A stretch of DNA of 64,000 bases from Haliotis cracherodii (taxonomy: Eukaryota), in contig NW_027266286.1 in assembly GCF_022045235.1 (NCBI RefSeq), positions 70,990,001 to 71,054,000 on the forward strand, read 5' to 3'. This document shows, one piece after another, positions 33,270-61,111 of the stretch; positions within the stretch are counted from its first letter, which is position 1, and each line of letters begins with the position of its first letter. The translations under genes were made by a program, and so were the position numbers. Below the pieces are notes generated by a model. The model saw nothing but the letters and a program-made list of their open reading frames with translations. It did not search any database and was not told the origin of the DNA.

Positions 33270-34634
33270 CTAACAGTAGTTATCCTTGAGGAGGAACAGC
33301 CTGACATAGGCATTCTGGTCGACAGGACTGGCGGAACATGCCGAATTGCCACCGAAGAAAGACGAAAATATGATGCCGTCGATTTGAACATCAGCAGCAT
33401 TCCTCATAGTGACCCCAGTGACGTCAAACAGCTTACCGAGGCCGTTCGCCGAGAGCCTGATGTAGCCGTCAGCCTGCCCGGGGGTGTTCAGTCGGACGGT
33501 CATCAACAAGGTGTACCACGTATTGTAGTCGAAATAGAAGCTGTTTCCACCAGTCTTGTGTCCCCAGTCTTGATTACAATCGACATCAGGTGAGCTACAG
33601 AATCCTCCCTGCTGGGTGACATCAGGGGCAAAGAGACTGATCCCTCCCATGCCCGCTGTTCTCCAGATGAGGCGGGAGGTGAAGCAGTCCTTGCCGGGGT
33701 CACCCCCAGCCGTACAGTTGACCCCACCCCCGTACAGACCCGGCAACTTTCCACCGTAGGCGAAGTCGAACCCTGTTGGAAACAGGACCTTGTATTGGAG
33801 GGTGACGCATTCCCTGGGTGCCACTGGGCTGGCGTAGAACTGTAGGCCGCTGTTCGGACCTGTCATGGCGTATGAACCTTGGGAGAAGGAGATGTCGTAA
33901 ACTTTGTTGTTGCTGCCATCGGGGTTGGGAGATACGGAAACTGATTCGCCCCCGATGTAAGTGTCTTGGTGTATATTCCATCCGTTTCGCCACATGTTGT
34001 CAATCAGTGGGTTTCCTGAGCTCCAGAACTTTACTGCAGCTGAGGATGTATAAAGTTTCGTTTGTTTTATGTATTAATCCATTAATGTTGTTTGAGAACA
34101 TGACAACGCTAAATTATTTTGGTCAATATTTCAAGATGCAGTTGGCCGAGAAACCAGATATTGTCAGGGATGATTTGAGGTTTTTGTTCCAAACGAACTC
34201 ATGAAATCAAACTTTTAAAAAGTATCACTTTAAAAAATACTTTGTAGCAAAATCATTCTAAAAATCAAAATAATTGTCTGGCTCAAATAAAAGTATTGTG
34301 AAGTAGGTAGAATCGAACAAATTGACTGTATTGACTAGGGTTGTAATCTGTTCTGACCGCATTTCATTTATGTATTTTCTCTACTGAATGAGTGAGTTCA
34401 TGTTTTTGCCCCTATTAGAAATTTTACAGAAATATCATTGTCGTTTGCACCAGAAAATGGCTTCACACATTGTACCCATGTGGGGAATAGAACCCGAGCC
34501 TTCAGTGTGACGAGCGGACGCTTTCATCGCTAGGCCACCGCACCGCCCCCGTGTGATGCGTGATGAGGTCACTGACCTGTGGTTGAGATACAGCACCCCA
34601 GCAGCTGAAGCGTCAGCGTCAGCATCATCGTCAT
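33270..34634 (-). CDS. PL14-like secreted protein A1 (275 aa); coding exons 34634-34577 and 34039-33270; non-coding exon 1 ~36797-36767
   Basis: Exon 3 has the PL14 motifs FDFxxGGKLPGLYGG, CFTSRLIWR, VRLNTPGQADG and IDGIIFSSFFGG. The 58-nt exon 2 (MTMMLTLTLQLLGCCISTT, signal-peptide-like) joins in frame (phase 1) via CAG|GTCAGT and CCTCAG|, giving AAVKFWSSGNPLIDNMWRNG. AATAAA lies ~85 nt after the stop. Confidence 0.92.
34389..34550 (-). mobile_element. SINE family 1 in A1 intron 2 (orthologous copy at 42095-42245 in A2)
   Basis: Same position in both paralogues, so it predates the A1/A2 duplication. Confidence 0.8.
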
Positions 34635-35185
34635 GGTATCTTGACAAGAGAAAAAGGGTTTTCATTCATGAGATCATCATTCAACACACAGAGGCAACGA
34701 TAGGACGTTGCACACTCAGTGTATATACATTGGGAACCTTGTCGTCATAGGCGACTAAATGGATCGGGTGGTTAGGCTCGGTAACTTCGATGATGCATGT
34801 CATCCAATCCCATAGATCAATGTTCAGTCACTGGATTGCCTGGTCCACACTAGATAATTTGTTGACCACCGCCATATAATGGAATATTGCTGAGAGCGGT
34901 GTCAAACAACAAACAAACACCGTCACAAATCATGCCGTTTTGAACAACGATTCGGTTATACCGCGATATGTCAGCTTAAATAGAAAATAGGATCTTACCA
35001 ATTACAATACCACCAACGATCTAAATATAAGTACTCGTATCTGTTGGCAAATGTCTCAGGAAGTGAATCATGTTTCATTTGTCGTTTGATTGCAACTGTG
35101 CTTCTCGAATAAACCATAGTGACATCTATAACAACAATTAAAGGCGGATTCTGCCCGGGCAAAGTGTCTCTCTATTTCTACCTGG

Positions 35186-35188
<3 letters not shown>

Positions 35189-35240
<52 letters not shown>
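35189..35240. repeat. (TAA)n microsatellite
   Basis: Direct reading; abuts the R4/Dong-like element. Confidence 0.95.
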
Positions 35241-35244
<4 letters not shown>

Positions 35245-36586
35245 GCAAAATAAAGTAATACTTATGCTGTACCCGTCCTGTCATATTATTCTTTTGGTAT
35301 TGTTGATTGGACGAAATAAGAAATTCAGAGTATTGACACCTTCACAATCATATCAGACAATAGATCCCACCACCCTCCCTCTTCCCTCAATCGCATATAT
35401 TTACCAATCATTATGGGGGGACGTGATTTGATTAACGTTGGGGCTCTTCATGATAGAATTGTTTTGTGCACCTTTGCATACATTTTTTTGTCTGATGATC
35501 CTCTTGTGAAGCACGTCAAGACTCATGATGAAAACAAGGCATTCCACAGTTTTCTGAAACGAGCCAGGGATGTGGGACATAATCTCAATGTCGGTGTTGA
35601 TTTTGTTGACGGTTCTGTACTGCTGGACGGTACAGAATTGAGTGTCAAACAAGCGAAGTGCCATATTAAGTCGCCCAGGAGAGGCTATCTGAACGACCAC
35701 TGCATCGAGTTTATGTGCAGTGTGTTGAGAAGATCAACATTCCTGCAGAGTCCTTTGCTTGGATGAAGTCGTCTGGCCTCAAAAGTGAAACAGAAGGCTT
35801 TCCGTTTGCTGCTCAGGACCAGTCACTTCCAACTCGAAACCGTCAATGTGTGATTTTGCATCAAAATGTAAATAGGACATGTAGATTATGTAATGAATTC
35901 AATGAGACTGTCCAACACATTGTCAGTGGATGCCCAGCTTTGGCACAAACACAGTATCTTAAGCGACGTGATGGTGAAGCTCGATCATTTTATTACCGTC
36001 TTCGCCATGCCTGTGGTTTTGACACGGAGGTCCACCCATGGTTCGACCCGGAATATGTAGAGGCCGTCATGGAAAATGATAAATACAAAATTCTTTGGAA
36101 TAGGCCCATTTAAGCCTCAGATGTAGCCAGGCCAACAAACCTGATCTTGTCCTTTTTGATAAATCCAATAAAATCATTTATATCATTGAATTTTCTGTCC
36201 CCTTTGACACCAATGTGATTGACAAGATTGAGGAAAAACATGGCAAATATGCAGACCTCGCTTTCGAAATGTCACGCTTGCATCCCAAGTACCAAGTTGT
36301 CCGACTCCCCATTGTTCTCGGTGCCTTATGTTTGGTACCTCCCAATCTGTTGACTGACCTTGGGAGAGTACCTGGGTTTGCTACCAGGAATACAGCCCTT
36401 CTGACAATCTGGATAATGCAGAAGGCTGCAGTGTTGGGAGTTTTCATATTCTCCGAAACGTTCTGGGTGGGTTTGACAAGGCAGCGCTTCCTGTGAGAAG
36501 TCCCATTCGCTGTCTGGGCTGCGTGTAGAGGAGGCAAGGGCCCTGAGCTGATGATGAGCCTAACCTGACCTTAATAATAATAATAA
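35241..36586 (+). mobile_element. 5'-truncated, degenerate R4/Dong-like non-LTR retrotransposon (RT C-terminus, CCHC knuckle, restriction-like endonuclease) in intron 1 of A1
   Basis: TYAVPVLS..FGIVDW; ETEGF.FAAQDQSLPTRN; CRLCNEFNETVQHIVSGC; KPDLVL..IIEFSVPFD..KYADLAFE; contains frameshifts; flanked by (TAA)n on both sides. Confidence 0.88.
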
Positions 36587-36766
36587 TCTATCATAGACAT
36601 TTGTTTACGCATCACTATGAAATAGTGATAATACCAGGTGTTCACGAAAACATGAGCGTATCATGCCTGACCAGTGGGACCCGTCACAAACACATGCAAA
36701 GGCTAAACTAAACTGTCATGTTAACAAGCAATTCCTCACAGGAATAGTGATATTCACACAACCTAC

Positions 36767-36846
36767 CTTGTTTCTGTTGTCAGCGAGGGAGAAGAGTGAC
36801 AACACCAGACTACTGATGGTATAAATATACACAACCCATATTATCT
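36767..36846 (-). promoter_or_regulatory. A1 core promoter (AGATAA, TATA-like, TCACTC Inr) plus 31-nt exon 1
   Basis: AGATAA 36846-36841, TATATTTATA ~36829-36820, Inr A at 36797, AAG|GTAGGT donor. Same spacing in the four paralogues. Confidence 0.6.
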
Positions 36847-37639
36847 GTAGATCAAATTACCTGACTTTAACATAGAAAGGAAGGAAATGATTTCTGTTGT
36901 AGCCTAAAGGCGTGCATATTGTGACACCAAGTAATGGAGGGACAGTTGTTGCGCGTGTCGCTTGACAAAAGCATCACACTCCAGAACTGCGGTACACATG
37001 ACCTTGGATATATACATCTAGTCATCAAAGCCAGGTCGCGTGTCTTCATATGCCTTTAGGAACATAAAGTTTATGCCTCTTTAACCGCACCTGAACTGAC
37101 CAATGGTATCTTGAAATCTTTCAATATTCCACTGCCACTGTTGTTTTATAGCGTAGATATTATGGCTTTGACCTCCACGTGTCTCTGTTTGTCTAATTAT
37201 ACTGCCTCAACCAATTCAGATGATGCTTCAGCGTTGATGAAGCTGCAAGTCTGTGCATTATATTCCAGCAATACTGTCTCTAAACGTTGCTCGACGAAAT
37301 CAAAAGGCTCCATGAAGACTGCCTAATGGGCCATTTACACCCATCCGTATTTTCTTACCCGTATCTGTCTGACGCTCGGTATTAAGGGGCTGAAACAAGG
37401 ACTGGTCGGCTCGGAGTCACTATACTGTGTCTGAGTGGGGTATTCATGTTAAGCTACGGCACGGTATCTCAGTTGGCTAGCACTATAAATCGGCATCAGT
37501 CCGGACTAGTACAAGCACGAAGATGCTGAAGATGAGTAAATATCACTCGATAAAACTAAAAATAACTAAAGAATGTACAAAGAATATACAAGACATGTTT
37601 AGGAACGTGTTTCAACCAACCAACCAACCAACCAACCAG

Positions 37640-37669
<30 letters not shown>

Positions 37670-37671
<2 letters not shown>

Positions 37672-38105
37672 GAGAAGGCCAAAGGCCTACAGTACATGAA
37701 TACAAAGAAGTGGAGGGTACATTTATACAATAGAATATACATCAATGGCCATGATAACTGTTATATTGCCTCAAGTCGTGGAGTTAATGCATGCTTTCTG
37801 AGAAAATGAACATTGATATGAATATCTTCGCGATATATTTTGTCTGCATTTGTAAGTAAAGATTATAAAAGCGAGGATCCTTGAAAAAATGATCATTAAT
37901 GAATAAGTAAATATTGATATTTTTATCTTCTATATTATTACAATTACACAGTTGACATATTCTGTCGTCTCTTTGAATGCTGCAGTGCCTACCTGATTTA
38001 TTAAGGAGGCCATGAGAGCTGCATCTAAATCGGGCTAACGCCACTCGGAACTTCTTTAAATCTATTTCAAACAAATAGTGCTCTCTATTGAAGTTTCTTT
38101 TGATA
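37670..38105 (-). mobile_element. 3' fragment of a CR1/L2-like LINE
   Basis: EHYL....RVALARFRCSSHGL...GR....RICQLCNCNNIED matches the C-terminal LINE ORF2 motif; followed by a (TTGA)n/(TTGG)n tail at 37670-37612. Confidence 0.7.
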
Positions 38106-39396
38106 TCAATTTGCCAATCAATAGCGTGTGTGTCCACCTCTGGTTGCGATGCAAGCAACACATCTTCGTCTCATGGAATGGACCAGGCGTCGCACAAAGT
38201 CCTGTGGGATATCTGTACATATTTGCTGGAGCATGTTTCGAAGTCCCCGGAGTGTCTGTTGAACACGTGGTTGACGTCGAAGGCGCCGATCCATCTCATG
38301 CCACATGTGCTCGATTGGTGAGAGATCAGGGGAGCGAGCCGGCCAGGGGATGACATTCACGTTGTTTTGTTGAAGAGAATCCTGAACAAGTCGAGCAATA
38401 TGAGGCCGGGCGTTGTCATGTTGAAAGGTAATGCCTGGGCCATGACGACGCAAAAACGGTAGAACAAGAGGGCCGATAATCTCGTCGCGTTAGCGCTGTC
38501 CATTGAGATTTCCCTCTACCACTATCAAACAGGCCCTCTGTCTTGCTGTAATCCCACCCCATACCATAACGCTGCCGACCCCGAACCGATCTTCTTCCAT
38601 GGCACAAAGATTGACGTAGCGTTCACCTCGACGTCGGTACACTCGAATCCGTCCATCGCTGTGGCTGAGGTGAAAACGAGACTCGTCAGTGAATAGAACT
38701 GTCTGCACCACTGAAGACGTGCTTGACGGTGGTTTCCTGTCAAAATGGGACGTCTGGAGGGTCTTCTGGCGACAATCCCTGCACATCTGAGGCGGCGACG
38801 TACGGTTTGTGAAGATATTCGTCGAAGACCAGGGATGCTTCTTTGCAGTCACTGTTGCTGGCTGGAATCGATTTCGTAGGTGTGTTGTTCGAATCCAGTT
38901 GTCTTGTCGATTATTGGTTACGCGTGGCCTGCCACTCCGAGGATGGTCTCTGACTGCATTCGTCTGTTGCCAACGTTGCCATAACCACCAAATAGTGTTT
39001 CTGTGGACGTTAAATTGTCTTGCAACATCACGTTGACTCGATCCTGCTTCAAGCATACCAATGGCGCGCACACGCTCATTTCCGGACAGGCGTGGCATTT
39101 CGTAATGTTGAATAATTGCGTAATTTTGTTGTTTTTCTGAGTGGTTGTTGTCTGCACGATGCTGAACAATGCATATGGAATCCCGTAAACGCACATGTTT
39201 TTATACCGATTCTTGGTTAGTGAAATGCATGGGGCTTGCATAAAAGTCAACTTTTGCATGGAATGCATGCTTTTCTGTAGCGGTTGCGTTTTTGTGACTT
39301 GATTCCATACATGTACTACAACATTGAAAACCAAACTTTATTTGTTTGAAAAATACACTAAAATATTGGTGTCACGGGAACTTTTGTTGTTGAGTA
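38106..39396 (-). mobile_element. Degenerate Tc1/mariner transposon (one TIR retained)
   Basis: MPRLS..RAIGML HTH; RSGRPRVT; VLFTDESRF; VMVWGGI; FQHDNARPH; WPARSPDLSPIEHMW; GGHTRY; frameshifted. Right end TACTCAACAACAAAAG plus TA at 39396. Confidence 0.93.
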
Positions 39397-39642
39397 TATA
39401 TTGAAATTATATGTGCAAATCAGATTGACAGGTACTTGCATAACACATATACCACAGCACTAACAACGAACTTTGTACAATATTAACATAAACATGTACA
39501 TATTTACCAAGCTGATGGTGACAAGAACAATTCACGGAAGTAACTACGGATAAGTGGTAACGTAAGTACAGATACGTGTCATTGATACGGGCATGAAGAC
39601 GACATAACGGACAGGTGTGATCCTGGCTTAAGATTGTTCGTG

Positions 39643-40570
39643 TGCTGCCTGTAGGTTACGCGTAGAGTGCTTGGAGACTGTCTGAAGACTTCCTTTAGAC
39701 GGCCTGTAGAATGTTTGTAACCTCTGTAAAGACTACGCACAGGTTTCTGCTAGATGACTGCCCGTAGACGCCTCTAGACTGTCCGTAGACTGTCCGCATA
39801 CTGCCTGTAGCTGCCCATCTAGCTGCCTGTAGACTGCCTGTGTATCTTGCTGCCTGTAGACTGTCTGTTTATCTTGCTGCCTGTAGACTGTCTGTGTATC
39901 TTGCTGTCTGTAGACTGTCTGTGTATCTTGCTGCCTGTAGACTGTCTGTACATCTAGCTGCCTGTATATTGTCTGTATATCTAGCTACCTGTAGACTATC
40001 TGTGCATGAAGCTGCCGGTAGACTGTCTGTATATATTGCTACCTGTAGGCTGTCTGTGGATCTAGCGACCAGTGGAATGTCTGTGCATTACGCTGCCTGT
40101 AGACTGTGTTTGTATCTTGCTGCCTGTATACTGTAACTGCCCGTATATTGACTGTGCATCTAGCTGCCTTTATATTATCTGTATATCTAGGACTAGTGGA
40201 ATGCCTGTGCATAAATCTAGCTACATGTAGACTGTCTGTGTATCTTGCTGTCTGTGGACTGTACATCTTGCTGCCTGTATACTGTCTGTGTATCTTGCTG
40301 CCTGTAGACTGTCTGTATATCTAGCGACCAGTGGAATGTCTTTGTATCTTGCTGCCTGTAGACTCTCTGTGTATCTTGCTGTCTGTAGACTGTCTGCGCA
40401 TCAAGCTGCCCGGATATTGTCTGTGTATCTAGCTGCCTGTATTTTGTCTGTATACCTAGCAATCAGTGGAATGTCTGTGAAGCTGATAGACGGTCTGTGC
40501 ATAAAGCTACCTGTAGACTTTCATTGTATCTAGCTGCCAATGGAATGGTTGTGCATCTAGCAGCCTGTCT
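39643..40570. repeat. Degenerate 11-bp/27-bp satellite (CTGCCTGTAGA core)
   Basis: 11-bp periodicity grades into the 27-bp unit CTGCCTGTAGACTGTCTGTGTATCTTG. Confidence 0.9.
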
Positions 40571-40988
40571 TATCACGACGCACCAGCATTTTTGGATATC
40601 CCATGCTCACATGGCTTGTATACCTTTTCGGAGAAAAGTATAAGCAGGGTGCTGACAAACCAAGGATCTTAATCGGAGAGAGCCTGTCAATCGACCCATC
40701 ACCAGCAGCCAAGGGACATAATCCTAAACAACAAATTCCGAGTGCATTGGGCTACCAGTGTGCCCAACACGAAGAGACTACCAGATAGCATAGTTATGGT
40801 GACTTCGGTGGCACCTCTTCTGAAGTCCAATGTGTTCCTCTAAAGATTACGTGTCGCTCCATAATAACAACATTCATCACCACCATCGAACTTAGTTAAC
40901 TTTATTCATGATAGTTAAATACAGAGTCCTACAACTTGAGATTTTACATTACACAATAAATCAATCGGTCTGACGTATAATATATATT

Positions 40989-42326
40989 TTAACAGTAGTT
41001 ATCCTTGAGTTGGAAGCTCCTGAAAAAGGCATTCTGGTCGACAGGACTGGCGGAACATGCCGAATTGCCTCCGAAGAAAGACGAAAATATGATGCCGTCG
41101 ATTTGAACATCAGCAGCATTCCTCATGGTGACCCCAGTGACGTCAAACAGCTTACCGAGGCCGTTCGCCGAGAGCCTGATGTAGCCGTCAGCCTGCCCGG
41201 GGGTGTTCAGTCGGACGGTCATCAACAAGGTGTACCACGTATTGTAGTCGAAATAGAAGCTGTTTCCACCAGTCTTGTGTCCCCAGTCTTGATTACAATC
41301 GACATCAGGTGAGCTACAGAATCCTCCCTGCTGGGTGACATCAGGGGCAAAGAGACTGATCCCTCCCATGCCCGCTGTTCTCCAGATGAGGCGGGAGGTG
41401 AAGCAGTCCTTGCCGGGGTCACCCCCAGCCGTACAGTTGACCCCACCCCCGTACAGACCCGGCAACTTTCCACCGTAGGCGAAGTCGAACCCTGTTGGAA
41501 ACAGGACCTTGTATTGGAGGGTGACGCATTCCCTGGGTGCCACTGGGCTGGCGTAGAACTGTAGGCCGCTGTTTGGACCTGTCATGGCGTATGACCCTTG
41601 GGAGAAGGAGATGTCGTGAACTTTGTTGTTGCTGCCATCGGGGTTGGGAGATATGGAAGCTGAATCGCCCCCGATGTAAGTGTCTTGGTGTATATTCCAT
41701 CCGTTTCGCCACATGTTGTTATTCTGCGGGTTGGCTGAGTTCCAGAACTTTACTGCAGCTGAGGATGTATAAATTATTATATTATTATTATATAAAGGAT
41801 GTCTAGTGTATTAATTCATAACGTTGTTTGAGAGTATGACCACGTTGAATATTTTAGGTCAGTATTCCAAGATGCAGTAGGCCCAGAAACCAGATAGGGA
41901 TAATATGAGTTTTTTGTCCTTAATGAACTTTTAATAAGCATTACTTTTAAAGAATATTTCATTGCAAAATCATTCTAAAAACCAGAATAATTAACTGGCT
42001 CAAATAAAAATATAGTGAAGTAGGTCGAATCAAACACATTGCCTGTATTGACGAGGGTTGTAATTTGTTTCATTCATGTATTTCCTGTACTGAATTAGTG
42101 AGTACAGATTTGCGCCCTTACTTGCAATTTTACAGAAATATGATTGTCGTTGGCAATAGAAAATGGCTTCACACATGTGGGAATAGAACCCGAGCCTTCA
42201 GTGTGACGAGCGAATGCTTTAATCGCTAGGCCACCACACCGACCCTTTGTGTAATGCATGATGAGGTCACTGACCTGTGGAGGAGATACAGCATCCCAGC
42301 AGCAGCAGCGTCAACATCATCGTCAT
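40989..42326 (-). CDS. PL14-like secreted protein A2 (273 aa); coding exons 42326-42275 and 41758-40989; non-coding exon 1 ~43575-43545
   Basis: Paralogue of A1. Exon 2 encodes MTMMLTLLLLGCCISST; GT-AG phase-1 intron; same PL14 motifs; AATAAA at 40906-40901. Confidence 0.92.
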
Positions 42327-45095: not shown

Positions 45096-45600
45096 CCGCC
45101 TATTGACTGCCAGTATACTGCCCGTAAACTGCCTATAGACCGCCCGTAAACCGCCTATTGACTGCCAGTATACTGCCCGTAAACTGCCTATTAACTGCCT
45201 GTAGACTGTTTGTAAACAGCCTATTGACTGCCTGTAGACTGACCGTAAACCGCCTATTGACTGCCAGTATACTGCCCGTAAACTGCCTATTGACTGCACG
45301 TAGACCGCCCGTAAACTGCCTATTGTCTGCCTGTAGACCGCCCATAAACCGCCTATTGACTGCCAGTATACTGCCCGTAAACTGCCTTTTGACTACCTGT
45401 AGACTGAGCGTAAACCGCCTATTGACTGCCCGTAAACTGCCCGTAAACTGCCTATAGACCGCCCATAAACCGCCTGTTGACTGCTTGTAAAATGTGCATC
45501 TAGCCTCCTGCAGACTGCCAGAAGCTTACTATAGCTGTCTGGAGGGTGTAGCTGCAGTAGCCGTAGGCTGTCAGTAGACGTCCTTTAGCTGCCCTTTTAA
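45096..45600. repeat. 11-bp-based satellite with higher-order units
   Basis: Monomers CCGCCTATTGA, CTGCCAGTATA, CTGCCCGTAAA and CTGCCTGTAGA. Confidence 0.9.
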
Positions 45601-45710: not shown

Positions 45711-47074
45711 TTCTCTTCAAAAAAGGAAACGCAAAGACAGATTTGTGTGAGGTAGGAAAATATATTTAAACGAGGAACCGTAGAAGGTATTGAGCCAAAA
45801 TGATGTGGAGAGAACACTTGGTTCAAAAGGTGAACATCAGCTACCATCAATAACGCGTATGTCTCCCGTTGGAATCGATAGCGGCCTGACATGTCCTCCC
45901 CATGGAAGAGACGAGTATACGAATCACATCCTGGGGAATGTTAGCCCCATCGGCCTGCAAAAGCCAACTGCTTCAACGTCTTGGGTTGTGGTTGACGTTG
46001 GCGTAGCCGTCTATCCAATAAATCAAACAGGTGCTCTATCGGGTTCAAGTTCGGGGATCTGGAGCGCCAGGGGAGAACATCAACGTTGTTATTGTATAGA
46101 CAGGGTCGAGCGTTGTCCTGCTGGAATACACCGTTGGCTGCAATTGGGAGGACATGTGGATGGAGAATTTCGTTGATGTATCGTTGAGCCATAACATTGC
46201 CCTGGATTTGGACCAAACCTGTTCTGCCATGATGAGAGATAGCCACCCACATCATAACACTACCCCAAAAAACCTGTCCACTTCCTGTACGCAGTTTCCG
46301 GCATAACGGTCTCCCCGACGTCTTCGGTCCCCTCGAAGGAGGAGAAATCTTGATTCGTTACTGAACCAGACATCTCTCCATCGCAGTTGAGGCCATACCC
46401 TGTGTTGTCGACTCAATATGACGCGTCGAACAGGACGTCTTGCTCATAGACCTGCTGCTCTTAAACGGTTTCGTACAGTCTGGTCGGAGATTCTGTGCAG
46501 TCCGGGTATTTGGGATGCGGTTGAGGTGGCTGTGGTCATCCTTTTACGTAGGTGGCGCAGTCGGACGTAGCGATCTAGGCGGGGATGGGTACTCTTGGTC
46601 GTCCCGACCTTGGCCGATCACGTGTTGACCCATGCTGTTGAAACCGATCCCATAGCTTTGTGATGGTGCTGGGCGCTACATTGATAACCCTGGCAACAGC
46701 TGATCGGGATTCACCGGTCTATGACGTTGTTTCTTTGCACTTCTGTTAATCTTGGCATGTTGTTGAACTGTCACTGTTTGATTGACGCAGATGCCAGGCA
46801 GACACATCCCTGCACTTTGATACCGTTCATACTGCTGCTGCACGTGCAGTACGTGCAGCTCCGTGGCCCTTTTGTTAATGGACTAGGTGCGTTTTTTTCC
46901 GAATCGTACGTGTTTCCCGACTAATGGTTTGCATGTCCTTGTGATCATTATGATCTTGGAAATTTGTCACTGAAACTATAACACATTAAACCTCCTCATT
47001 TTGCACCTCTTGGTCCACTAATTTTGCTTTTATGGCCCAAAATAGCCGTATTGCGTTTCTTCTTTTTAAGAGTA
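45711..47074 (-). mobile_element. Degenerate Tc1/mariner transposon with both TIRs
   Basis: FSNESRF, VMMWVAIS, FQQDNARP, WRSRSPNLNPIEHLF; TIRs T(T/A)CTCTT.AAAAA.GAAACGCAA flanked by TA. Confidence 0.9.
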
Positions 47075-47130
47075 TATATTTGGTATATTTGAGATGACAA
47101 GAACTAGTTCTTTAATTACAAATAAAAAAG

Positions 47131-48226: not shown

Positions 48227-49513
48227 TTAGCAGACGTTGTCCTTGAGGACGAAATACCGGAAGTAGACATGAGTATCGACAGGACTTCCGGAACATGACG
48301 ATGTCCCGCCGAAATAATTGGAAAAAAGAATGCCGTCGACTTTCACATCCGAGGATTCTCTGATTACAACGTTACTGACATCGTACACTTTACCGACACC
48401 CCCAACAACGATTCGAACGTAGCCATCTGTCTGGCCGGGTGTGTTAAGGCGAACAGTTTGCTGGATTGTGTACCAGGTTCCGGTCTGGAACTGGAAACTT
48501 CCGCTGCCCAGTCGGTGCCCCCAAGCATCATTACACTCCACCCCTTCAGTGGTACAGAACTCGGGTGTCTGCTGTGATGTGGTGAAGAGTGCCACTCCAC
48601 CCATGCCTCCTGTTCTCCAGATGAAGCGGGATGTGAAACAATCCTTGCCTGGGTCACCTCCAGCAGTACAGTTGACCCCGCCACCGTACAGACCAGGCAA
48701 CTTTCCACCGTAGGCGAAGTCGAAGTTGTCATCGAACCACACTTTGTAGGAGTGTCAGGCACTCCCTGGGCTCTAGAGGAGTGGAGTAGAACTCAGCTCC
48801 ACTGTAGAGATCGGTGAGGCCGTAGGAGCCCTGGGAGAGAAAGATGGCGCTGACTTTGTAGTTACTGCCGTCGGGGTTTGGTTCAGCAGACACCGACTCC
48901 TGACCCCTGTATGTGGAGGTATCCAGGTTCCAGTTCCCGCGCCATATTGTCTTGCTTCTTGGGGTCTTAGAGTTCCAGAGTTTAATCCCATCTAGTCAGA
49001 ATATAGTTGATATAACAATTGTAGGTAATATGCCATTAATATGTTGTAATTAAGGGAAAACAAAGCATAATAATGTGTGTATGTAAATTTAGTCCAAGCT
49101 GGAGGGAGGAAAACATAAAGTTTGTTTAAATATAATATTAAATTCATAAACGTGCTGTGGAGTGTCATGTTTACAGTTTAAATCATTGTTTTGCTTTATA
49201 TAAATGGTTTCAAAATCAATGTTAAAATTTTCGCGCCTCAAATACCCATATTACTCACGTCACAATCGGAAAACACATAATTTTTACCTCGCATTAAGGG
49301 ACACATACTGGCCTCTGAACATTACATTCAGTGAAACACAATCAAGACCGGTTCCTTCCGGTCACATTTTGTAACAGAAATACAAGAATGAGTGTCGTAT
49401 ATACTTAATACCTACATGGGCTTATACTGTCTACCTGTACGGGGGTCAGTTATCTTACCTGTGAAATGGCTGAGGGTGACAGCGGCCAGGAGCAGGTATC
49501 GGAGCTGAGACAT
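48227..49513 (-). pseudogene. PL14-like gene B1 with 2-bp frameshift; exons 49513-49459 and 48991-48227; non-coding exon 1 ~50123-50094
   Basis: Nearly identical to B3, but exon 3 is 765 nt versus 767 nt. gtaggagagtg has become gtaggagtg at ~48750, giving ...ECLTLLQSVVR* before the GGKLPG motif. Could also be an assembly error. Confidence 0.75.
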
Positions 49514-50900: not shown

Positions 50901-51034
50901 NNNNNNNNNNNNNNNNNNNNNNNNNNNNNNNNNNNNNNNNNNNNNNNNNNNNNNNNNNNNNNNNNNNNNNNNNNNNNNNNNNNNNNNNNNNNNNNNNNNN
51001 NNNNNNNNNNNNNNNNNNNNNNNNNNNNNNNNNN
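50901..51034. other. Assembly gap (N)
   Basis: 134 N. Confidence 1.
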
Positions 51035-51570
51035 NCAGTGGCCGAAAAACACACTCAGGCCTTAAATACTGTTTATACATCTTGTAGAAGCATCAACAGT
51101 AATATCAGGACGAAGACATTCCACAACACTTCAACATCTGTAGTTTCAGAATAAACACCACATACAAATTACTAAACTTTGCGTGTAATATTCGAGAATA
51201 CAACCAGTAAGAACACCACAAACACCATAACTAGAACTAATCTATTTTGGGGGGACTACAGTTTTGCCTGGACCACCTCATAGCAACAATGTATTTTCAG
51301 AGGTATGCTTTAACAAAAACTGCAGTGTGTAGAAAGCGAGTCGGTACGGCTCAGTGATTACAAATATTAGGTACCACTCTGGGTTCGGTGTTAATTAGAT
51401 GATGAGATGATGAGAGATTTTATTAGGTGGGGACATGAGGTAGTCGGGTACACGCCAGGCAGATTCTGGGGATGTATCCTGAAGGAAGGTAAGGCTGCCT
51501 GATTGAGTTGCACCTGGCGAAGAATGACCAGTCGGAGACTCTCAAATATCCTCGTAACTTCTGGCACGTG

Positions 51571-51602
<32 letters not shown>

Positions 51603-53385
51603 TGTGTATGTGTGTGTGTATGTGTGCTGGGTGTTTGAATGTAGATCATTATCAGCAACATAAGACAATATGTGCGTGACATCACGTTCTCATCTGTCTC
51701 AGCTGTCTTTAATGTGTGTTTGTGTTTTGTTCCCTAAAAACATTTAACTTGACAATCCATGGAAACTTCAAATATTTCAAGATCGTCGAATCATCTAGGG
51801 TTACTACTTTTTGAGATGTGTGCGAAACAAATTATTACTATTTCATGAACTGTTATTTTGGTGGAAAATGTTAAAATACTGGAGTATATTATACAAAGGT
51901 AAATTTTCTGTCGGATAATCAGCAGCATATTATGTCAGTTCTCAAAGGCAAGGCAAGGGCCGCCTCTTGGGCCTAGTGGATAGAGCGGCTAAGACGAGAA
52001 CGGAAGGTCGGTGGTCCGATGCCCGCTCGCATCATACAAAAAGACTTTAAAAGATGTTACCTGCAGTTGTTACCCTGTCTGGCGCTCGGTATTAAGGGGA
52101 CAAAACAAGGAATAGTCCGGTCGGAGTCAGTATACTGTGTCTGAATGGGGTAACCGCGGTACGGTAGCTCAGTGGGTTAGTATTATAAAACCGGCATGAG
52201 ACCGTACTAGTACGTATACAAGCAGCCACATACACACACGCGCGCATGCGCGCGCGCGCACGCACGCAAGCACACACACACACGTGTATGCACGTCGCTA
52301 TATGAGTGCAATAATCTTGAAATCCCTTTTAAACCCCTTTTTTGAATCATTTAATGTCACAGCGGGGTTTACAAGGTATAATACGTGGTTGTGTTAGGTT
52401 TTTCTGGGTTTGTTTGACACATTTTGAAGGGTTTTCTAGATTTAGAGGATAAAACAACACTTGATCGATTTGGAGTTACTTTCACGTGTGTGAGTGAGGT
52501 ACCCATGTTAATCTTCAGCGTGGTATCTCAGTATGCTAGTTCTATCATACCATCATTATCCCGGACTAGTACACATGCCCACACGCACATCCGCATACAC
52601 ACGCACACACACACAAACATACACACACGCACACACGTGTTTAAACTTTATTTTCCCCTAACCATTGGTATTTACATTTAAACTTGAACCAATAATATGA
52701 GGAATAATGTTTTTGTCATCCCGATTCTGAAAAATGTTCTTACCACTGCCTTCTTGAAACGACATTAAAAAACATCATGAATGGACTCACTCGTGGAATA
52801 ATAGTGTAATATATCTATTCTGAAACCAATTTGGATTATACACTATCTAGAATGTTGATGGTGTACTCTAGCCTAAAATATATTGCTCAGCACAAATTAC
52901 ACCATTGAGAAACAATGTTTTAGAAAACGTCAAAATGTGCACAATAAATCCGGACGAACCTCACACAACCATGCCCATCTTGTACTCCCCGCATTGACAT
53001 TATGTGCGATGATGGGGTTTACGTCTCACTCATATAGCAACGTGCATGTTTTTAGTGTGTGGTTGAGACTAGTGCCGGTTTTTAGTGCCAGCCAAATGAA
53101 TTACCAAGCCGCAATTTAACATGGATACCCCACTCAGACACAGTATACTGACTCCGAGCCGACCAGTCCTTGGTTTAGCCCTTTAATGCCAAGCGTCAGA
53201 CAGGGTAACAATAGTACCATCTTAAAAACGTCTTTTTGTATTCGCGGGCGGGGATCCAAATCATGAAATCCGAAATCCTGACAGACGCTCTTGCTCACCA
53301 GACCACGGAGGCGCGATGACATAATATGTCAGACTGAGCAGGTGCATGTGAACTCTTCATGACGTCGCCATACATGTGGTCTTTC

Positions 53386-53588
53386 AGGTCACCGTGGCCT
53401 GTGGGAAACTGAATCAATGCACCCTCTTTAATAAAGTAATGAAAAATAGATAACACGGAGTTCACTTATCGCATCTCACAAAACAAATAAAACGATCCTA
53501 CGATAAGGTGTAGTCCTTAATAAGCAGGTCACATACGTTGAATCTTCACTCCACACGGCGTCAACAGAACAGAACAAAACAAACCAAG
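53386..53588 (+). promoter_or_regulatory. B2 promoter: IR3 palindrome, GATAA, TATA-like, Inr, exon 1
   Basis: AGGTCAccgTGGCCT 53386-53400; CGATAAG at 53501; TTAATAAG at 53517; TCACTC Inr at 53548; AAG|GTATGT donor. Inverted homologue of the B1 promoter. Confidence 0.6.
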
Positions 53589-53598
53589 GTATGTTATA

Positions 53599-53771
53599 CT
53601 GTCAACTACTGTTATACGAACTCAAAGGGACCACTAATTTGAATTCGTTATAACCGTAGTTCGTTATTAGCACATGTACAACGTATATACAGAAAATGGA
53701 CGGGACCAATAAACAGTTTGTTTTATTCGGAAGTTCGTTGAAGGCGTGTTCGTTATAAACGTAGTTTACTA
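53599..53771. mobile_element. Longer copy of the same MITE family, 10 nt downstream of the B2 exon-1 donor
   Basis: Same terminal motifs (GTTCGTTATAA.CGTAGTTTACT) and TA flanks; absent from the B1 and B3 introns. Confidence 0.75.
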
Positions 53772-54444
53772 TATATGGTTGTATTTCAAGATGTTGTACA
53801 ATGATACGTGACGCCTGATTATATGCCAAACTAATCGCCGTTTTTGGATGTCGGCTAGAACTGACTTACTGAGTGAAGACATTTGTTTTATATATGGAAA
53901 CTACAGCAATGACACGTTCATATGATTATTGAATATATAAACAATTCCGATATAAGTCATTAGTGCCGATAGAGCTATTGCAATAAACTTGTCTATGTTA
54001 GTGTTTCTGTCAGTGTTCTATTTCTTATGGGGGCACAGGTGGCCCAGCCGTCTTAGGCATGTGTAGTAGCTCAAATGGCTGTATAGTAGCGTCATTTAGT
54101 GTACCAGAGACCTTTGATCGTGGGTACGAACAAGATTCGCCAGTATTATGTTTCAAGGTTTGTCAGCACCATAACCGTGTGCATGGGTTTAACTAAGGTG
54201 GTCAACGTCTAAGACCTGCATCGCCTCAGGCTTTTCTCCCACATTTAGCTGACACGCCGCGATATAGCCGAAAATGATATTCACTGCGACGTTAGATCAA
54301 CTCTATTTGATGTAAACTCCTTCATCCATGTTATCTCCAATGTTTCAGTCAATATCCATGTTCGTAGTATGTCCTATGTTGTGGTCGCGCCCATGTTCCT
54401 GGAACGTCCGTGTTTTTGCTTGGTCCACGATCCTCGACTGAAGG

Positions 54445-56000
54445 TCCACGTTCCTATAATGTGCATGTTTCTACAATGTCAATGTTTCTAAAATGTCCAC
54501 ATTTCTACAATGTGCATGTTTCTACAATGTCCATGTTTCTACAATGTCAATGTTTCTACAATGTTCACGTTTCTACAATGTCCACGTTTCTACAATGTCC
54601 ACGTTTCTACAATGTCCACGTTTCTACAATGTCCATGTTTCTACAATGTCCACGTCTCTACAATGTCCACGTTTCTACAATGTCCACGTTTCTACAATGT
54701 CAATGTTTCTACAATGTTCACGTTTCTACAATGTCCACGTTTCTACAATGTCCACGTTTCTACAATGTCCACGTCTCTACAATGTCCACGTTTCTACAAT
54801 GTCCACGTTTCTACAATGTCCACGTTTCTACAATGTCCATGTTTCTACAATGTCCACGTTTCTACAATGTCCACGTCTCTACAATGTCCACATTTCTACA
54901 ATGTCCATGTCTCTACAATGTCCACGTTTCTACAATGTCAATGTTTCTACAATGTTCACGTTTCTACAATGTCCACGTTTCTACAATGTCCATGTTTCTA
55001 CAATGTCCATGTTTCTACAATGTCCATGTCTCTACAATGTCCATGTTTCTACAATGTCCATGTTTCTACAATGTCCATGTTTCTACAATGTCCATGTTTC
55101 TACAATGTCCATGTTTCTACAATGTCCACGTTTCTACAATGTCCATGTTTCTACAATGTTCACGTTTCTACAATGTCAATGTTTCTACAATGTCCATGTT
55201 TCTACAATGTCAATGTTTCTACAATGTTCACGTTTCTACAATGTTCATGTTTCTACAATGTCCACGTTTCTACAATGTCCATGTTTCTACAATGTCAATG
55301 TTTCTACAATGTTCACGTTTCTACAATGTCCACGTTTCTACAATGTCAATGTTTCTACAATGTCCATGTTTCTACAATGTTCACGTTTCTACAATGTCAA
55401 TGTTTCTACAATGTCCACGTTTCTACAATGTCCACGTTTCTACAATGTCCATGTTTCTACAATGTCCACGTTTCTACAATGTCCACGTTTCTACAATGTC
55501 CACGTTTCTACAATGTCCACGTTTCTACAATGTCCATGTTTCTACAATGTCCATGTTTCTACAATGTCAATGTTTCTACAATGTTCACGTTTCTACAATG
55601 TCCATGTTTCTACAATGTCCATGTTTCTACAATGTCCATGTTTCTACAATGTCAATGTTTCTACAATGTTCACGTTTCTACAATGTCCATGTTTCTACAA
55701 TGTCCACGTTTCTACAATGTCCACGTTTCTACAATGTCCACGTTTCTACAATGTCCATGTTTCTACAATGTCCATGTTTCTACAATGTCCATGTTTCTAC
55801 AATGTCCATGTTTCTACAATGTTCACGTTTCTACAATGTCCACGTTTCTACAATGTCCACGTTTCTACAATGTCCACGTTTCTACAATGTCCATGTTTCT
55901 ACAATGTCCATTTCTCTACAATGTCCACGTTTCTACAATGTCCATGTCTCTACAATGTCCACGTTTTACAATGTCCATGTTTCTACAATGTCAATGTTTC
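54445..56000. repeat. 17-bp minisatellite (TTTCTACAATGTCCAYG)n in B2 intron 1
   Basis: About 90 units; stop-free in all three + frames. Confidence 0.97.
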
Positions 56001-56012
56001 TGTTTCAGAACG

Positions 56013-57431
56013 ATGTCTCAGCTTCTATGCTTCATCCTGGCTGCTGTCACTCTCAGTCATTCTACAGGTAAGATCGCTCACTCCAGACAGGTAGACCAAT
56101 TAGTCCGTGTGGTTCCGTTTGAAGAATTTACTAAACTGACTTTCTATCAATAGCTGTATTACTGATATTGACCAAAAAAGGGGTGGGATAATGTTTGCGA
56201 GAGGCAATATAAATGCACATGTTGTATTTGGTGTCTATTTTATACCTCTTAATAACAGTCCACAACTACTCAGACGATTATCAGAAATATTTCTATTTCT
56301 CAATCGTTTACTTCTGCAGTGAGTGGGTAAGTATGGTTTTACGCCGCTTTTAGCACTTTTCCAGCAATATCACGGCGGGGAAACAAGAATGGGCTTCACA
56401 CATGGAACTCATGTGGAGAATCGAAGCCGGGCCTTGGGCGTGACGAGCGAACGCTTTAACCACTAGGCTACCCGACTGCCTCTTATTTCTGTATTGATTA
56501 CTTGATATTATAACACCACAATGGCATGATTCTTGTTTATATCACACTCCTGCTATTTCTCCGTCTTCATGAAATGCATGACGTTATATATGTGACTTTT
56601 CACTACAGCACGTTAATGCTTTATGACATTACATCTGAAAGCTCTTTATTTTTTCTCCATCCAGTTGGTATTAAACTCTGGAACTCTAAGACCCCAAGAA
56701 GCAAGACAATATGGCGCGGGAACTGGAACCTGGATACCTCCACATACAGGGGTCAGGAGTCGGTGTCTGCTGAACCAAACCCCGACGGCAGTAACTACAA
56801 AGTCAGCGCCATCTTTCTCTCCCAGGGATCCTACGGCCTCACCGATCTCTACAGTGGAGCTGAGTTCTACTCCACTCCTCTAGAGCCCAGGGAGTGCCTG
56901 ACACTCTCCTACAAAGTGTGGTTCGATGACAACTTCGACTTCGCCTACGGTGGAAAGTTGCCTGGTCTGTACGGTGGCGGGGTCAACTGTACTGCTGGAG
57001 GTGACCCAGGCAAGGACTGTTTCACATCCCGCTTTATCTGGAGAACAGGAGGCGTGGGTGGAGTGGCACTCTTCACCACATCTCAGCAGACACCCGAGTT
57101 CTGTACCACTGAAGGGGTGGAGTGTAATGATGCTTGGGGGCACCGACTGGGCAGCGGAAGTTTCCAGTTCCAGACCGGAACCTGGTACACAATCCAGCAA
57201 ACTGTCCGCCTTAACACACTCGGCCAGGCTGATGGCTACGTTCGAATCGTTGTTGGGGGTGTCGGTAAAGTGTATGACGTCAGTAACGTCGTAATTAGAG
57301 AATCCCTGGATGTGAAAGTCGACGGCATTCTGTTTTCCAATTATTTCGGCGGGACATCGTCATGTTCCGGAAGTCCTGTTGATACTAATGTCTACTTCCG
57401 GTATTTCGTCCTCAAGGACAACTTCTGCTAG
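56013..57431 (+). CDS. PL14-like secreted protein B2 (273 aa); coding exons 56013-56067 and 56665-57431; non-coding exon 1 ~53548-53588
   Basis: Exon 2 encodes MSQLLCFILAAVTLSHST, with tttcag| acceptor and CAG|GTAAG donor. The acceptor ccatccag| at 56664 gives VGIKLWNSKTPR... in frame. PL14 motifs intact; AATAAA at 57503. Confidence 0.92.
56319..56481 (-). mobile_element. SINE family 1 in B2 intron 2
   Basis: Matches the family consensus. Confidence 0.85.
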
Positions 57432-57571
57432 AAATATCTCAATATGCATGTGTTTAAACAACCACAGTGTAACCTCTGTTCTGTTCATGTTCTTGTTGTT
57501 TAAATAAAGAGCATAAACATTGGTCATTCTCATGTCATGATATGGGTTTATTTACACCTTCAACACAGATT

Positions 57572-57841
57572 GACCAAGTCGTCTAAGGCGCCGCGATTTG
57601 CTGTGCAGAGTTGCGTCCCTTGGGAACGCCAGAAACCTTTGATTGTGGGTTCGAATCCCGGTTCGCCCCGATTATGTTTCTAGGTTTGTCAGCACCATAC
57701 GCGTGCTCGTAGGCTTCACCGAGGTGGTTAACATCTGAGACCTGCATCATTCCGGGCTTTCCTCCCACATTAAGCTGACACGCCGCAATATAACTTGACT
57801 ACTTTTAAAGGGGGCGTTTAACCAAATTAACTCACTTACTC
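57572..57841 (+). mobile_element. SINE family 2
   Basis: TSD CAACACAGATT. Further degenerate copies at 28770-28937(-), 40578-40745(-), 44620-44765(+) and 54029-54305(+). Confidence 0.85.
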
Positions 57842-57984
57842 CAACACAGATTTACAATGCCGTAATGTTTCTTTAAAAAAGTAGAATAATTGTGCTGTCC
57901 GTTTTCGTAGAATTTATATTAACATAATAATTTTAGATTGCAAGTGCTGGAAGTCACGATATTACACACACACACACACACACA

Positions 57985-58016
<32 letters not shown>

Positions 58017-59827
58017 CACACACACAGAGACAAGCACACATCAAAGATATTCAGAGAAATATCTCACTTAATGCTGTATTTACAGATGTTCAAAGGTTAT
58101 CACGGATTCGTTTCCGTACTTTTGTGTATCTACGCATTTCGTCCAACGGGCTGTGAAATAAACTTAACTTCGCCGTATTTGTTTGATGTTCCTGATATGC
58201 AACATGACAGCTTGCCTATTTGAAAACTAAGTGATAAAGATAAACTGGACCCTGCCGTCTTTTGGGTATATTATGATTGAGAATCAAAATTCAATTTCAA
58301 ACACATCCACTTGAAACAGAAATAGCGAAGTACATCATTTGAAACTAAGCCTCAGTAAAGATGGCGACTATACTTAACCGTCGTAATTAATTTTGTATGG
58401 ACTAAAGTAGCGAAAACGGTGTTGTGGTAAAACATCGGGCAATCTCATTTAAGACGAATGCTACAAATTGGTCTGCGAGAATTGTGTTTTAATGAATATG
58501 TTAGCCATGTAAAATATTGCCTCATTGAGAAACTCACTGGCCTGAGATTATTTCTATAACTGACGCTGTTGCCGCGAATAGCTGCAATACTGCTAATCCG
58601 GCTTTAGGCAATATTCACTCACTCACTGACGGTGATATTTTGTTTCGAGCTTCCGGACAATTTTATTGAATATTTGTACAAAATTTCTTTTGTTAAATTA
58701 TAGTGAGCATGTTGAGGGTTTTAAAGTACATAGGAAAGTGTAACATCTGGAGAGGACTGTTATCAACAAAGGACCTTGTGTATGTAAATTAGATAGCATT
58801 TTCAAGCTCAAGTCATATGTTTGCTAAATGCTACTTGGAGCATGAAGAGCATTAGAGAAGCATGACCACAGGACTAATACGGAGCGCATGCGACTTGACC
58901 TTATAATATTACGCATGCGCACGGACAGTGTCTAAAACGCGAGAACAAGAGAACGCGAGGTCGTGAGAAAATAAAATGGCGCATTCTCGCGTTCTGGCGA
59001 TTTCGTGTTTTTGTGGCCTACTTTGACAAGTTGAGATTGCGAAGTTTTGCATCATGTCAAAAAGGCTCATTCCCGCGTTGGCGACTTTTGACAAAAAGTA
59101 CTATGTTGACTGAGGCGTTAAGCAGCATACACTTACTCATTTGCATTTGCAGCGGGACAAGTCGAATGGTCATGGTGACAAATGCACTTAGTCTAGAAAC
59201 AGGAGATTGTTTAGAAAAACCACAGAAGCGTCTATGAAATACACAAATTGCATTTTATTTGTATGCCAGAACGTTATTTTTACAGGCAAGTCACGCTGCA
59301 AGCTTTTTATTGATTTTAAAGGTGTTTCCCGTGTATATCAGAACATATAAGGCCATTAATAATGCTTCAGATTCAGTTCGGCAAGTGAATGTTCATAGCC
59401 ATTACATTGTCTGGGTCTTCAAGGGTTTCGGTCACCCAGCAGAAGAAGCCTTCCTTCACCCAGCAGTGAGTGGGTACCCGGTAGGATGAAACTGTAATAT
59501 GACTAAACCTTGGTGTATACTCCCAATGGGATTGAGAGTGAAATTTGAGTGCACACTGATCCATCAACATCAAACAAAGTCACTTGCCAAAAGATACACA
59601 ACATGTTGGGGGGCAGGGCGCCTGAAAAAATCTCTTGAGACAAGTTTCGATATTTGAATATGTAAAACATTAACAAAAACAGAAAGCGTGTTTCACTGTT
59701 TATTAAAATTCAAATAACATCTGGTATACTTTGATTATGTTCACATGATGCCCATTTATTATATTTTAATGAAGATGATGAGGATGTGGAAACTTCGAAG
59801 TTGAGAGAAAACACAATTGGGCAGGTT

Positions 59828-61111
59828 TTAGCAGACGTTGTCCTTGAGGACGAAATACCGGAAGTAGACATGAGTATCAACAGGACTTCCGGAACATGAC
59901 GATGTCCCGCCGAAATAATTGGAAAAAAGAATGCCGTCGACTTTCACATACGAGGATTCTCTAATTACAACGTTACTGACATCGTACACTTTACCGACAC
60001 CCCCAACAACGATTCGAACGTAGCCATCTGCCTGGCCGGGTGTGTTAAGGCGAACAGTTTGCTGGATTGTGTACCAGGTTCCGGTCTGGAACTGGAAACT
60101 TCCGCTGCCCAGTCGGTGCCCCCAAGCATCGTTACACTCCACCCCTTCAGTGGTACAGAACTCGGGTGTCTGCTGTGATGTGGTGAAGAGTGCCACTCCA
60201 CCCATGCCTCCTGTTCTCCAGATAAAGCGGGATGTGAAACAGTCCTTGCCTGGGTCACCTCCAGCAGTACAGTTGACCCCGCCACCGTACAGACCAGGCA
60301 ACTTTCCACCGTGGGCGAAGTCGAAGTTGTCTTCGAACCACACTTTGTAGGAGAGTGTCAGGCACTCCCTGGGCTCTAGAGGAGTGGAGTAGAACTCAGC
60401 TCCACTGTAGAGATCGGTGAGGCCGTAGGATCCCTGGGAGAGAAAGATGGCGCTGACTTTGTAGTTACTGCCGTCGGGGTTTGGTTCAGCAGACACCGAC
60501 TCCTGACCCCTGTATGTGGAGGTATCCAGGTTCCAGTTCCCGCGCCAAATTGTGTTGCGTCTTGGGGTCTTAGAGTTCCAGAGTTTAATCCCATCTAGTC
60601 AGAATATAGTTGATATAACAATTGTAGGTAATATGCCATTAGTATGTTGTAATTAAGGGAAATCAAAGCATAATAATGTGTGTATTTAAATTTAGTCCGA
60701 GCTGGAGGAAGGAAAACATAAAGTTTGTTTAAATATAATATTAAATTCTTATACGTGATGTGAAGTGTCATGTTTACAGTTCAAATCATCGTTTTGCTTT
60801 ATATAAATGGTTTCAAAATCAATGTTACAATTTTCGCGCCTCAAATACCCATAATACCCACAATCGGGAAACACATAATTTTTACCTCGCATTAAGGGAT
60901 ACATAATGTCCTCTGAACATTACATTCAGTGAAACACAATCCAGACCGGTTCCTTCCGGTCACATTTTGGAACAGAAATACAAGAATGAGTGTCGTATAT
61001 ACTTAATACCTACATGGGCTTATACTATATACCTGTATGGGGGTCAGTTATCTTACCTGTGAAATGGCTGAGGGTGACAGCGGCCAGGAGCAGGTATCGG
61101 AGCTGAGACAT
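59828..61111 (-). CDS. PL14-like secreted protein B3 (273 aa); coding exons 61111-61057 and 60594-59828; non-coding exon 1 ~61730-61701
   Basis: Exon 2 encodes MSQLRYLLLAAVTLSHFT; phase-1 GT-AG intron; DGIKLWNSKTPRRNTIWRG continues in frame into the 222-aa ORF with PL14 motifs. Confidence 0.92.

Follow-up and report, generated by a model that had tools for sequence, protein, structure and literature searches.

A tandem cluster of abalone PL14 proteins in which the active-site tyrosines of alginate lyases are replaced

Polysaccharide lyase family 14 (PL14) is the main alginate-lyase family of animals, and its reaction, a beta-elimination, requires charge neutralisation, a base at C5 and an acid at O4. 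From mutagenesis of AkAly30 and vAL-1, PL14 reportedly requires a lysine, a serine, an arginine and two tyrosines, and the AkAly30 variants Y140F and Y142F are reported to be inactive. AkAly30 is a polyM lyase secreted by the mollusc Aplysia kurodai (PDB 5gmt), and vAL-1 is a chlorovirus glucuronan/alginate lyase (PDB 3a0n); glucuronan lyase is among the known PL14 activities (PMC11890756). Beyond the family, the bacterial enzyme Aly36B (PDB 6kcw) represents PL36, a sister jelly-roll family. Here we describe a cluster of PL14 genes in the abalone Haliotis cracherodii, part of which occupies a 64,000-nucleotide stretch of the genome, hereafter the window (assembly GCF_022045235.1, contig NW_027266286.1, forward-strand positions 70,990,001 to 71,054,000; coordinates below are window positions unless a contig is named). 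The encoded proteins keep the lysine and the arginine of the family and have replaced the tyrosine pair, and they are probably either sugar-binding former enzymes or re-tooled enzymes.

Among the described systems, AkAly30 is the best match of the cluster proteins in both sequence and structure. It is likewise a secreted mollusc protein of the same size, and it shares with them the GGK lysine, the arginine and the pair of cysteines that clamps the active-site loop, although identity is only ~30%. The clade differs from it at Y140, Y142 and E138 and at the serine and arginine of the S-x-G-R-G motif, in an acidic isoelectric point (pI), and in one extra residue within the clamped loop (C-T-A-G-G-D as against C-S-G-G). 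The chlorovirus enzyme vAL-1 is more distant (~20% identity); its lysine, serine/threonine and arginine columns align with those of the clade, and it carries its own D-Y-I-Y motif. The nearest comparison by genome is with the HdAly/HdAlex-type paralogues on contigs 20, 15 and 1 of the same assembly, which belong to the same family, are similar in length and also stand in tandem, but have kept the Y-x-Y pair (save for one locus with cysteine at the first position) and score 240-258 bits against the family profile, compared with 171-185 bits for the clade.

To define the genes, large exons were located from six-frame open reading frames (ORFs), the domain was assigned with Pfam PF21294 (Polysacc_lyase_14, CAZy PL14), and splice-aware gene models were built. 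Five PL14 units lie in the window, with large exons that match PF21294 at E-values of 1e-46 to 1e-54 and scores of 158-184 bits in all five, against a curated cut-off of 27. Every gene has a two-exon layout, in which a short exon 1, bounded by a phase-1 GT donor, supplies the start codon together with a hydrophobic signal peptide, and an exon 2 of ~770 nt, preceded in the window genes by an intron of 462-597 nt, holds the entire PL14 domain. Four of the five genes (A1, A2, B2 and B3) are intact and encode products of 273-275 residues including the signal peptide, so named for the two sequence types, A and B, into which the cluster divides; the mature proteins have ~255 residues. A1 lies on the minus strand (exon 1, 34577..34634; exon 2 with the domain and the stop codon, 33270..34039; PF21294 E 1.3e-52), and its spliced product of 275 residues is identical over its whole length (100%) to the database protein P0001, 'uncharacterized protein [Haliotis cracherodii]'; searches were run with this protein or with exon 2 as the query. 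A2, also on the minus strand, combines a modelled signal-peptide exon at 42275..42326 with a domain exon at 40989..41758 (E 1.6e-53) into a spliced product of 273 residues. B2 is on the plus strand (signal-peptide exon, 56013..56067, whose spliced joint is seen in RNA-type contigs; domain exon, 56665..57431; E 3.2e-52; 273 residues), and B3 on the minus strand (modelled signal-peptide exon, 61057..61111; domain exon, 59828..60594, with an acceptor reading ctag followed by AT; E 5.6e-54; 273 residues). In B1 (minus strand; modelled signal-peptide exon, 49459..49513; domain exon, 48227..48991) two nucleotides (CT) are deleted between 48753 and 48752, so that the frame is shifted and a stop follows after 105 codons; a stop within this match was also returned by the genome scan. 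This gene is either a young pseudogene or the product of an assembly indel, and its frameshift was bridged with NN/X for translation. A preliminary description of this DNA had placed five genes between 33270 and 61111: these outer limits are exact and four of the genes are intact, whereas B1 is frameshifted.

The active-site residues were compared by aligning exon 2 with HMMER to AkAly30 (5gmt, E 4.7e-32; its PDB chain numbering is the author numbering, used here, plus 12) and to vAL-1 (3a0n), and both alignments run without gaps through the active-site strands. AkAly30 K99 corresponds to K117 in A1 and K116 in B2, S126 to T140 and T139, and R128 to R142 and R141, while E138 is replaced by G152 and G151, Y140 by S154 and A153, and Y142 by F156 and F155; all of these positions are encoded by exon 2, as are the further key residues H180 of A1 and H178 of B2. 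The substitutions that the preliminary description had read from a gap-free alignment are thus borne out, as are its codon positions for S-L-F (33638-33630, A type) and A-L-F (57066-57074, B type). Its assertion that the tyrosines are missing holds for these two types in the window, but a B-type protein of H. asinina reads A-L-Y and so retains the second tyrosine, at the Y142 position.

How unusual these changes are was judged from 352 PL14 domain hits, drawn from two database searches and from this genome and aligned to the family hidden Markov model (HMM), of which 258 are non-cluster domains that cover the region. The GGK lysine (K99 in AkAly30, K197 in vAL-1) and the arginine (R128 and R221) are each conserved in 100% of the 258, and both are kept in the clade, as had been described. 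The first tyrosine (Y140; Y233 in vAL-1) is conserved in 98% and is serine in A-type and alanine in B-type proteins; the second (Y142; Y235) is conserved in 99.6% and is phenylalanine in the clade apart from the H. asinina protein; the preceding glutamate (E138) is conserved in 95% and is glycine; and the serine and the arginine of S-x-G-R-G, conserved in 93% each, have become lysine or arginine and glycine or serine, respectively. The serine column (S126 in AkAly30, S219 in vAL-1) holds threonine in every clade member, and also in 13 of the 258 other domains. None of those 258 lacks both tyrosines, so that loss of the pair is confined to this Haliotis clade within the set. The C-F-T-S-R motif, which contains the arginine, persists as well, as do the W-R pair and the loop clamped by a disulfide. 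Replacement of other cleft residues had also been claimed, and it stands for CSGGR (now CTAGGD) and for G-x-S-x-G-R-G (now GHKTGGN or GHRLGSG), but the two arginines of FDFRRGGK are a trait of the HdAly-type paralogues only, most of the family having V-K there. The suggestion that the histidine of a WGH motif is a new catalytic residue finds no footing, since the G-H is shared by tyrosine-bearing relatives from a chiton, an annelid and the contig-1 group of the abalone and is therefore ancestral. Elsewhere in the set, a protein from a public contig (P0140) has glycine and threonine at the Glu138 and Tyr140 positions with Tyr142 kept; it groups with P0024, whose clade also includes an annelid protein, and may represent an independent, partial loss of the tyrosines in another lineage.

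An AlphaFold2 model of A1, computed from an 82-sequence alignment, has a mean predicted local distance difference test (pLDDT) score of 91, with low confidence at residues 1-20, as expected of a signal peptide. Its best structural match is AkAly30 (5gmt_A), with Foldseek template modelling (TM) scores of 0.83/0.86 and a Z-score of 34.7 at a root-mean-square deviation of 1.7 Å over 248 residues; it matches vAL-1 at Z 28 (3gne, Z 28.1) and the PL36 enzyme Aly36B at Z about 24.8. The clade is accordingly modelled as a PL14 beta-jelly roll, superposable on the solved PL14 structures.

The cluster genes are under purifying selection rather than in decay, as the preliminary description had held. Ratios of non-synonymous to synonymous divergence (dN/dS), calculated by the Nei-Gojobori method from joined exons of paralogues within this genome, are 0.20-0.27 between A and B types, where dS is saturated (~1.4-1.8), 0.50 for the A1-A2 pair, and 0.13-0.49 within the B type. 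Two of the copies, B4 and B6, encode identical proteins and differ at 6 synonymous and 0 non-synonymous sites. Across the 38 codons of FDFAYGGK...WRT, the changes between A and B types number 9 at synonymous and 1-2 at non-synonymous sites (dN/dS 0.03-0.05), in keeping with the earlier observation that they differ almost only at synonymous positions.

Transcription was followed by mapping to 55900-61200 the contigs of four small public runs, presumed to be RNA, which come from two organisms and two studies. Contigs that skip exactly 56068-56664, the predicted B2 intron (GT..AG), occur in runs X1, X2 and X4, and contigs that skip 60595-61056, the predicted B3 intron (CT..AC on the plus strand, GT..AG for this minus-strand gene), in runs X1, X2 and X3. 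Contig depth is roughly 100-2400 over exon 2, against 0-7 in the non-repeat intron stretch adjoining exon 1 (56077-56253), the remainder of the intron being a high-copy repeat. Given the removal of both predicted introns and the difference in depth between exon and intron, B-type genes are transcribed and spliced. The proteins thus combine the loss of catalytic residues with purifying selection and, for the B type, expression, the combination by which pseudoenzymes are recognised.

We propose that a mollusc PL14 lyase gene was amplified in tandem within Haliotis, as often happens to genes of digestion or recognition. The products retain the jelly roll and the former cleft's central strands, which hold the Lys, Arg, Thr and W-R residues and are the best-conserved region. 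The Y-x-Y pair, the preceding glutamate and the Ser/Arg of S-x-G-R-G have been exchanged for Gly, Ser/Ala, Phe, Lys/Arg and Gly/Ser as the proteins turned acidic (mature pI of 5.0-5.9 in the clade, versus 7-9 in eight of the nine other paralogues). The ancestral uronate beta-elimination would then most likely be lost, leaving an anion- or glycan-binding cleft. Because five of the most conserved polar residues of the cleft are replaced together, we infer that the ancestral lyase activity has most likely gone; glycan binding and the physiological role are inferred likewise. On balance we lean, by a modest degree, towards a lyase-derived, non-catalytic and lectin-like protein that binds an anionic glycan, probably algal or microbial. 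Sequence alone does not decide between such a binder and an enzyme with another mechanism.

Several points weigh against the binder. The retained lysine and arginine are homologous to K143 and R169 of Aly36B and would allow residual or altered lyase chemistry; Lys143 has been proposed to serve as both acid and base in that PL36 enzyme (PMC8286568). A 2026 review describes the PL14 mechanism as still unresolved, with Lys197 and Ser219 essential in vAL-1 (PMC13709232), and the counterpart of Ser219 in the clade is a conservative threonine. These points also make the case for Tyr140 as the catalyst, on which the preliminary description had relied, weaker than claimed, the lysine being kept here. 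That the cleft strands are so well conserved would be expected of an enzyme as much as of a binder. The low dS of FDFAYGGK...WRT (0.43, versus >2 elsewhere) may moreover stem from old gene conversion between A and B genes, in which case constraint would be overestimated; since the A-type proteins of H. asinina and H. rubra also differ from the window A type at several residues of this segment, such conversion may add to the identity.

The same residues could therefore still belong to enzymes, either re-tooled PL14 lyases or other glycan-active enzymes, in which the GGK lysine would act as acid and base and the arginine and threonine would neutralise the carboxylate, at a substrate or pH optimum unlike that of the tyrosine-bearing paralogues; the Tyr/His of FDFA-Y/H-GGK could contribute. 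Profile alignment places Aly36B K143 on the GGK lysine (the K143A mutant chain reads GGA there), which means that a lysine-centred mechanism exists in the superfamily, and the A1 model matches that enzyme in fold. Invariance of the lysine and arginine, a serine changed only to a threonine found elsewhere in the family, cleft strands whose conservation exceeds that of every other part (100% identity between A and B over ~35 residues) and a copy number of 11, which would suit a digestive enzyme family, all speak for continued catalysis. The joint disappearance of two tyrosines, a glutamate, a serine and an arginine speaks the other way, as does the uniqueness of the double tyrosine loss. PL36 itself has kept both tyrosines in its active centre (Tyr185/Tyr187), unlike the clade, and the first of them has been linked to proton transfer (PMC8286568). 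The Tyr/His position three residues before the lysine varies between very recent B copies, unlike a catalytic residue, and proteins of such acidic pI are ill suited to polyanionic substrates. We consider continued catalysis unlikely, though it deserves appreciable weight.

The cluster is larger than the five genes first described. A whole-genome six-frame scan with PF21294 returned 21 matches: nine loci with higher scores (240-258 bits), distributed over contigs 20, 15 and 1, one fragment, and the block on contig 23, whose intact copies score 171-185 bits and which extends from A1 in the window to ~22 kb past the window end. In total the cluster has 11 copies, nine intact and two frameshifted. 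The six loci beyond the window (contig positions 71054001-71076832; L010, L011, L013, L014, L019 and L021) are all of B type and comprise four intact genes and one frameshifted gene, of which L019 and L021 are the two pieces. The cluster is built as a repeated unit of ~9-10 kb, each with a convergent (plus/minus) pair of B genes. Outside it, the Y-x-Y pair is kept in eight of the nine other paralogues. The exception, L009 (contig 1, 15125103-15125711), has cysteine at the Y140 position in an otherwise usual motif (G-D-G-V-V-C-A-Y-I), and a fragment copy, L020, lies nearby; throughout the contig-1 group, valine replaces the usual glutamate ahead of the tyrosines.

Such an array might in principle be an assembly artefact, with collapsed or duplicated haplotypes around gaps posing as paralogues, and two runs of N in or beside the region, together with the identity of the B4 and B6 proteins, would be compatible with that. 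The two genes nevertheless differ at their six synonymous sites and in intron length (600 versus 527 nt), which makes them real paralogues rather than an assembly duplication. Copies recur in a regular unit with its convergent pair, several A and B genes are found in other Haliotis assemblies too, and A and B types are 40% apart at the protein level. An artefact is on these grounds highly improbable. One of the gaps (50901..51035) is intergenic, between B1 and B2; the B1 start codon is 1.4 kb downstream of it in the direction of that gene, and the repeat ahead of B2 begins 3.4 kb away on the other side. As it touches no exon or intron, continuity across it is irrelevant to the gene models. The second (32524-32677) is also outside any gene, ~600 bp past the stop codon of A1.

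A maximum-likelihood tree built from 42 domains unites the tyrosine-less proteins in a single clade (support 100/100, stem branch 0.72), so that the expanded subfamily first described is a distinct lineage; the long stem fits a functional shift. The A and B subclades each include an H. asinina orthologue, which places the A/B duplication before the split between H. asinina and H. cracherodii, and orthologues are also present in H. rubra and H. rufescens, making four Haliotis species in all. The clade falls outside the HdAly-type, contig-15 and contig-1 groups, and its deeper position is a polytomy of lophotrochozoan, bacterial and some fungal PL14 proteins; FastTree places it beside a chiton protein within a mostly animal, lophotrochozoan-rich group. 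A search of 1.84 billion cluster representatives, a library whose coverage of other vetigastropods is not established, returned no closer relative outside Haliotis than chytrid (40%) and chiton (42%) proteins, both with Y-x-Y. Two cysteines, one in P-R-x-C-L-T-L and one as the very last residue, occur together in 15 of 264 proteins, all of them clade members or contig-1 abalone paralogues; among the HdAly/HdAlex-type paralogues, the contig-1 group alone shares them with the clade. An approximately unbiased (AU) test does not reject a union of the clade with the contig-1 group (p 0.27). The clade probably descends from a mollusc PL14 lyase, possibly from the contig-1 paralogue group. Origin by transfer from fungi, considered because the best non-Haliotis hits in one database search are fungal, was set aside in view of the FastTree placement beside the chiton protein, the polytomy in the maximum-likelihood tree and the rare cysteine pair shared with the contig-1 paralogues.

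The fold could instead have been recruited for a role that does not involve glycans: the proteins might bind other proteins, contribute to structure or mucus, or inhibit or regulate the true lyases. Alternatively, the family could be drifting towards loss. Two of the 11 copies are frameshifted, A-type proteins diverge fairly fast (73-75% identical to their H. asinina counterpart, versus 88% for B), and the mature cluster protein has an odd number of cysteines, seven, which could allow covalent partners. Drift is at odds with dN/dS well under 1 in all comparisons, with the persistence of both types across the split between H. asinina and H. cracherodii, and with spliced transcripts; for a new role of another kind, the best-conserved region is still the Lys/Arg/Trp cleft, whose retention suggests that the ligand is small and anionic, or a glycan, and does not speak for a new binding surface. 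We regard a non-glycan role or drift as distinctly improbable, and return to the lectin-like binder of an anionic glycan.

Pseudoenzyme offshoots are common in general, and the binder would have counterparts among enzyme-derived lectins such as the GH16-like beta-glucan recognition proteins of arthropods and the GH18-like chi-lectins, in which the cleft is kept and the catalytic residues are lost. These are secreted, under selection and often duplicated, but the likeness is one of analogy and not of homology, the fold or family and the chemistry being different from those of the clade. We know of no lyase-derived lectin in animals, and none was found in the literature searched; that literature also yielded no paper on tyrosine-less PL14 proteins or on these abalone lyase-like proteins, which public records label 'uncharacterized protein' or 'PL14 domain-containing protein'. 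The clade could tentatively be put forward as the first polysaccharide-lyase-derived lectin family of an animal. In a gastropod lineage that grazes on algae, a digestive PL14 lyase would have been duplicated, deprived of its tyrosines and multiplied to about 11 copies, and the secreted products would bind or sense polyuronates of algae or microbes during feeding, in mucus or in immune recognition. We hold this proposal with less confidence than glycan binding as such. Whether tyrosine or lysine supplies the acid and base in PL14 is debated, and the clade amounts to a natural, selectively maintained double tyrosine knock-out with the lysine and arginine in place. Should its proteins prove active, the tyrosines would be dispensable and a PL36-like lysine mechanism would gain support; should they only bind, they would be lyase-derived lectins of an animal and potential reagents for binding alginate or uronans. 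Since the Y-x-Y, Glu and Ser/Arg signature is absent, the cluster genes should not be annotated as alginate lyases. They form the largest PL14 subgroup in the genome of an alginate-feeding animal, 11 of ~21 loci, and for that reason counts of alginate lyase genes from domain hits would overstate digestive capacity about twofold.

The remaining features of the window are repeats and unrelated reading frames. The 5' flank or untranslated region of B2 holds a 17-bp tandem repeat on the plus strand (54444..56001; ~92 copies, 92% matches), which ends 12 bp before the start codon and gives long spurious ORFs in three frames. Its unit, when translated, agrees with the N-terminal extension of P0003, the B-type gene model of H. 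asinina, so that the repeat has arisen by amplification of part of the 5' leader of the gene itself. Two stretches around B2, at 56254-56607 in its intron and 57493-57846 in its 3' flank, reach contig depths >100,000 in all four RNA-type runs, and loose ends are numerous there; they probably represent a transcribed repeat of very high copy number that resembles a short interspersed element (SINE), and contain neither a tRNA detectable by ARAGORN nor an internal repeat detectable by a repeat finder. Between the PL14 genes, minus-strand ORFs at 38118-39194 and 45941-46255 resemble a degraded Tc1/mariner-type transposase when their translations are read by eye. Minisatellites occupy the spacers after A2 (39817-40568) and before B1 (45098-45489), with 27/54-bp and 33/99-bp units. 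Outside the cluster, 20237-21922 is a G-rich low-complexity array (GC content 0.58, GC skew 0.71) with ORFs of 370-560 residues in several frames that read as TPSP/HTTPSPR-like repeats, and an unrelated ORF of 387 residues lies on the minus strand at 18422-19585.

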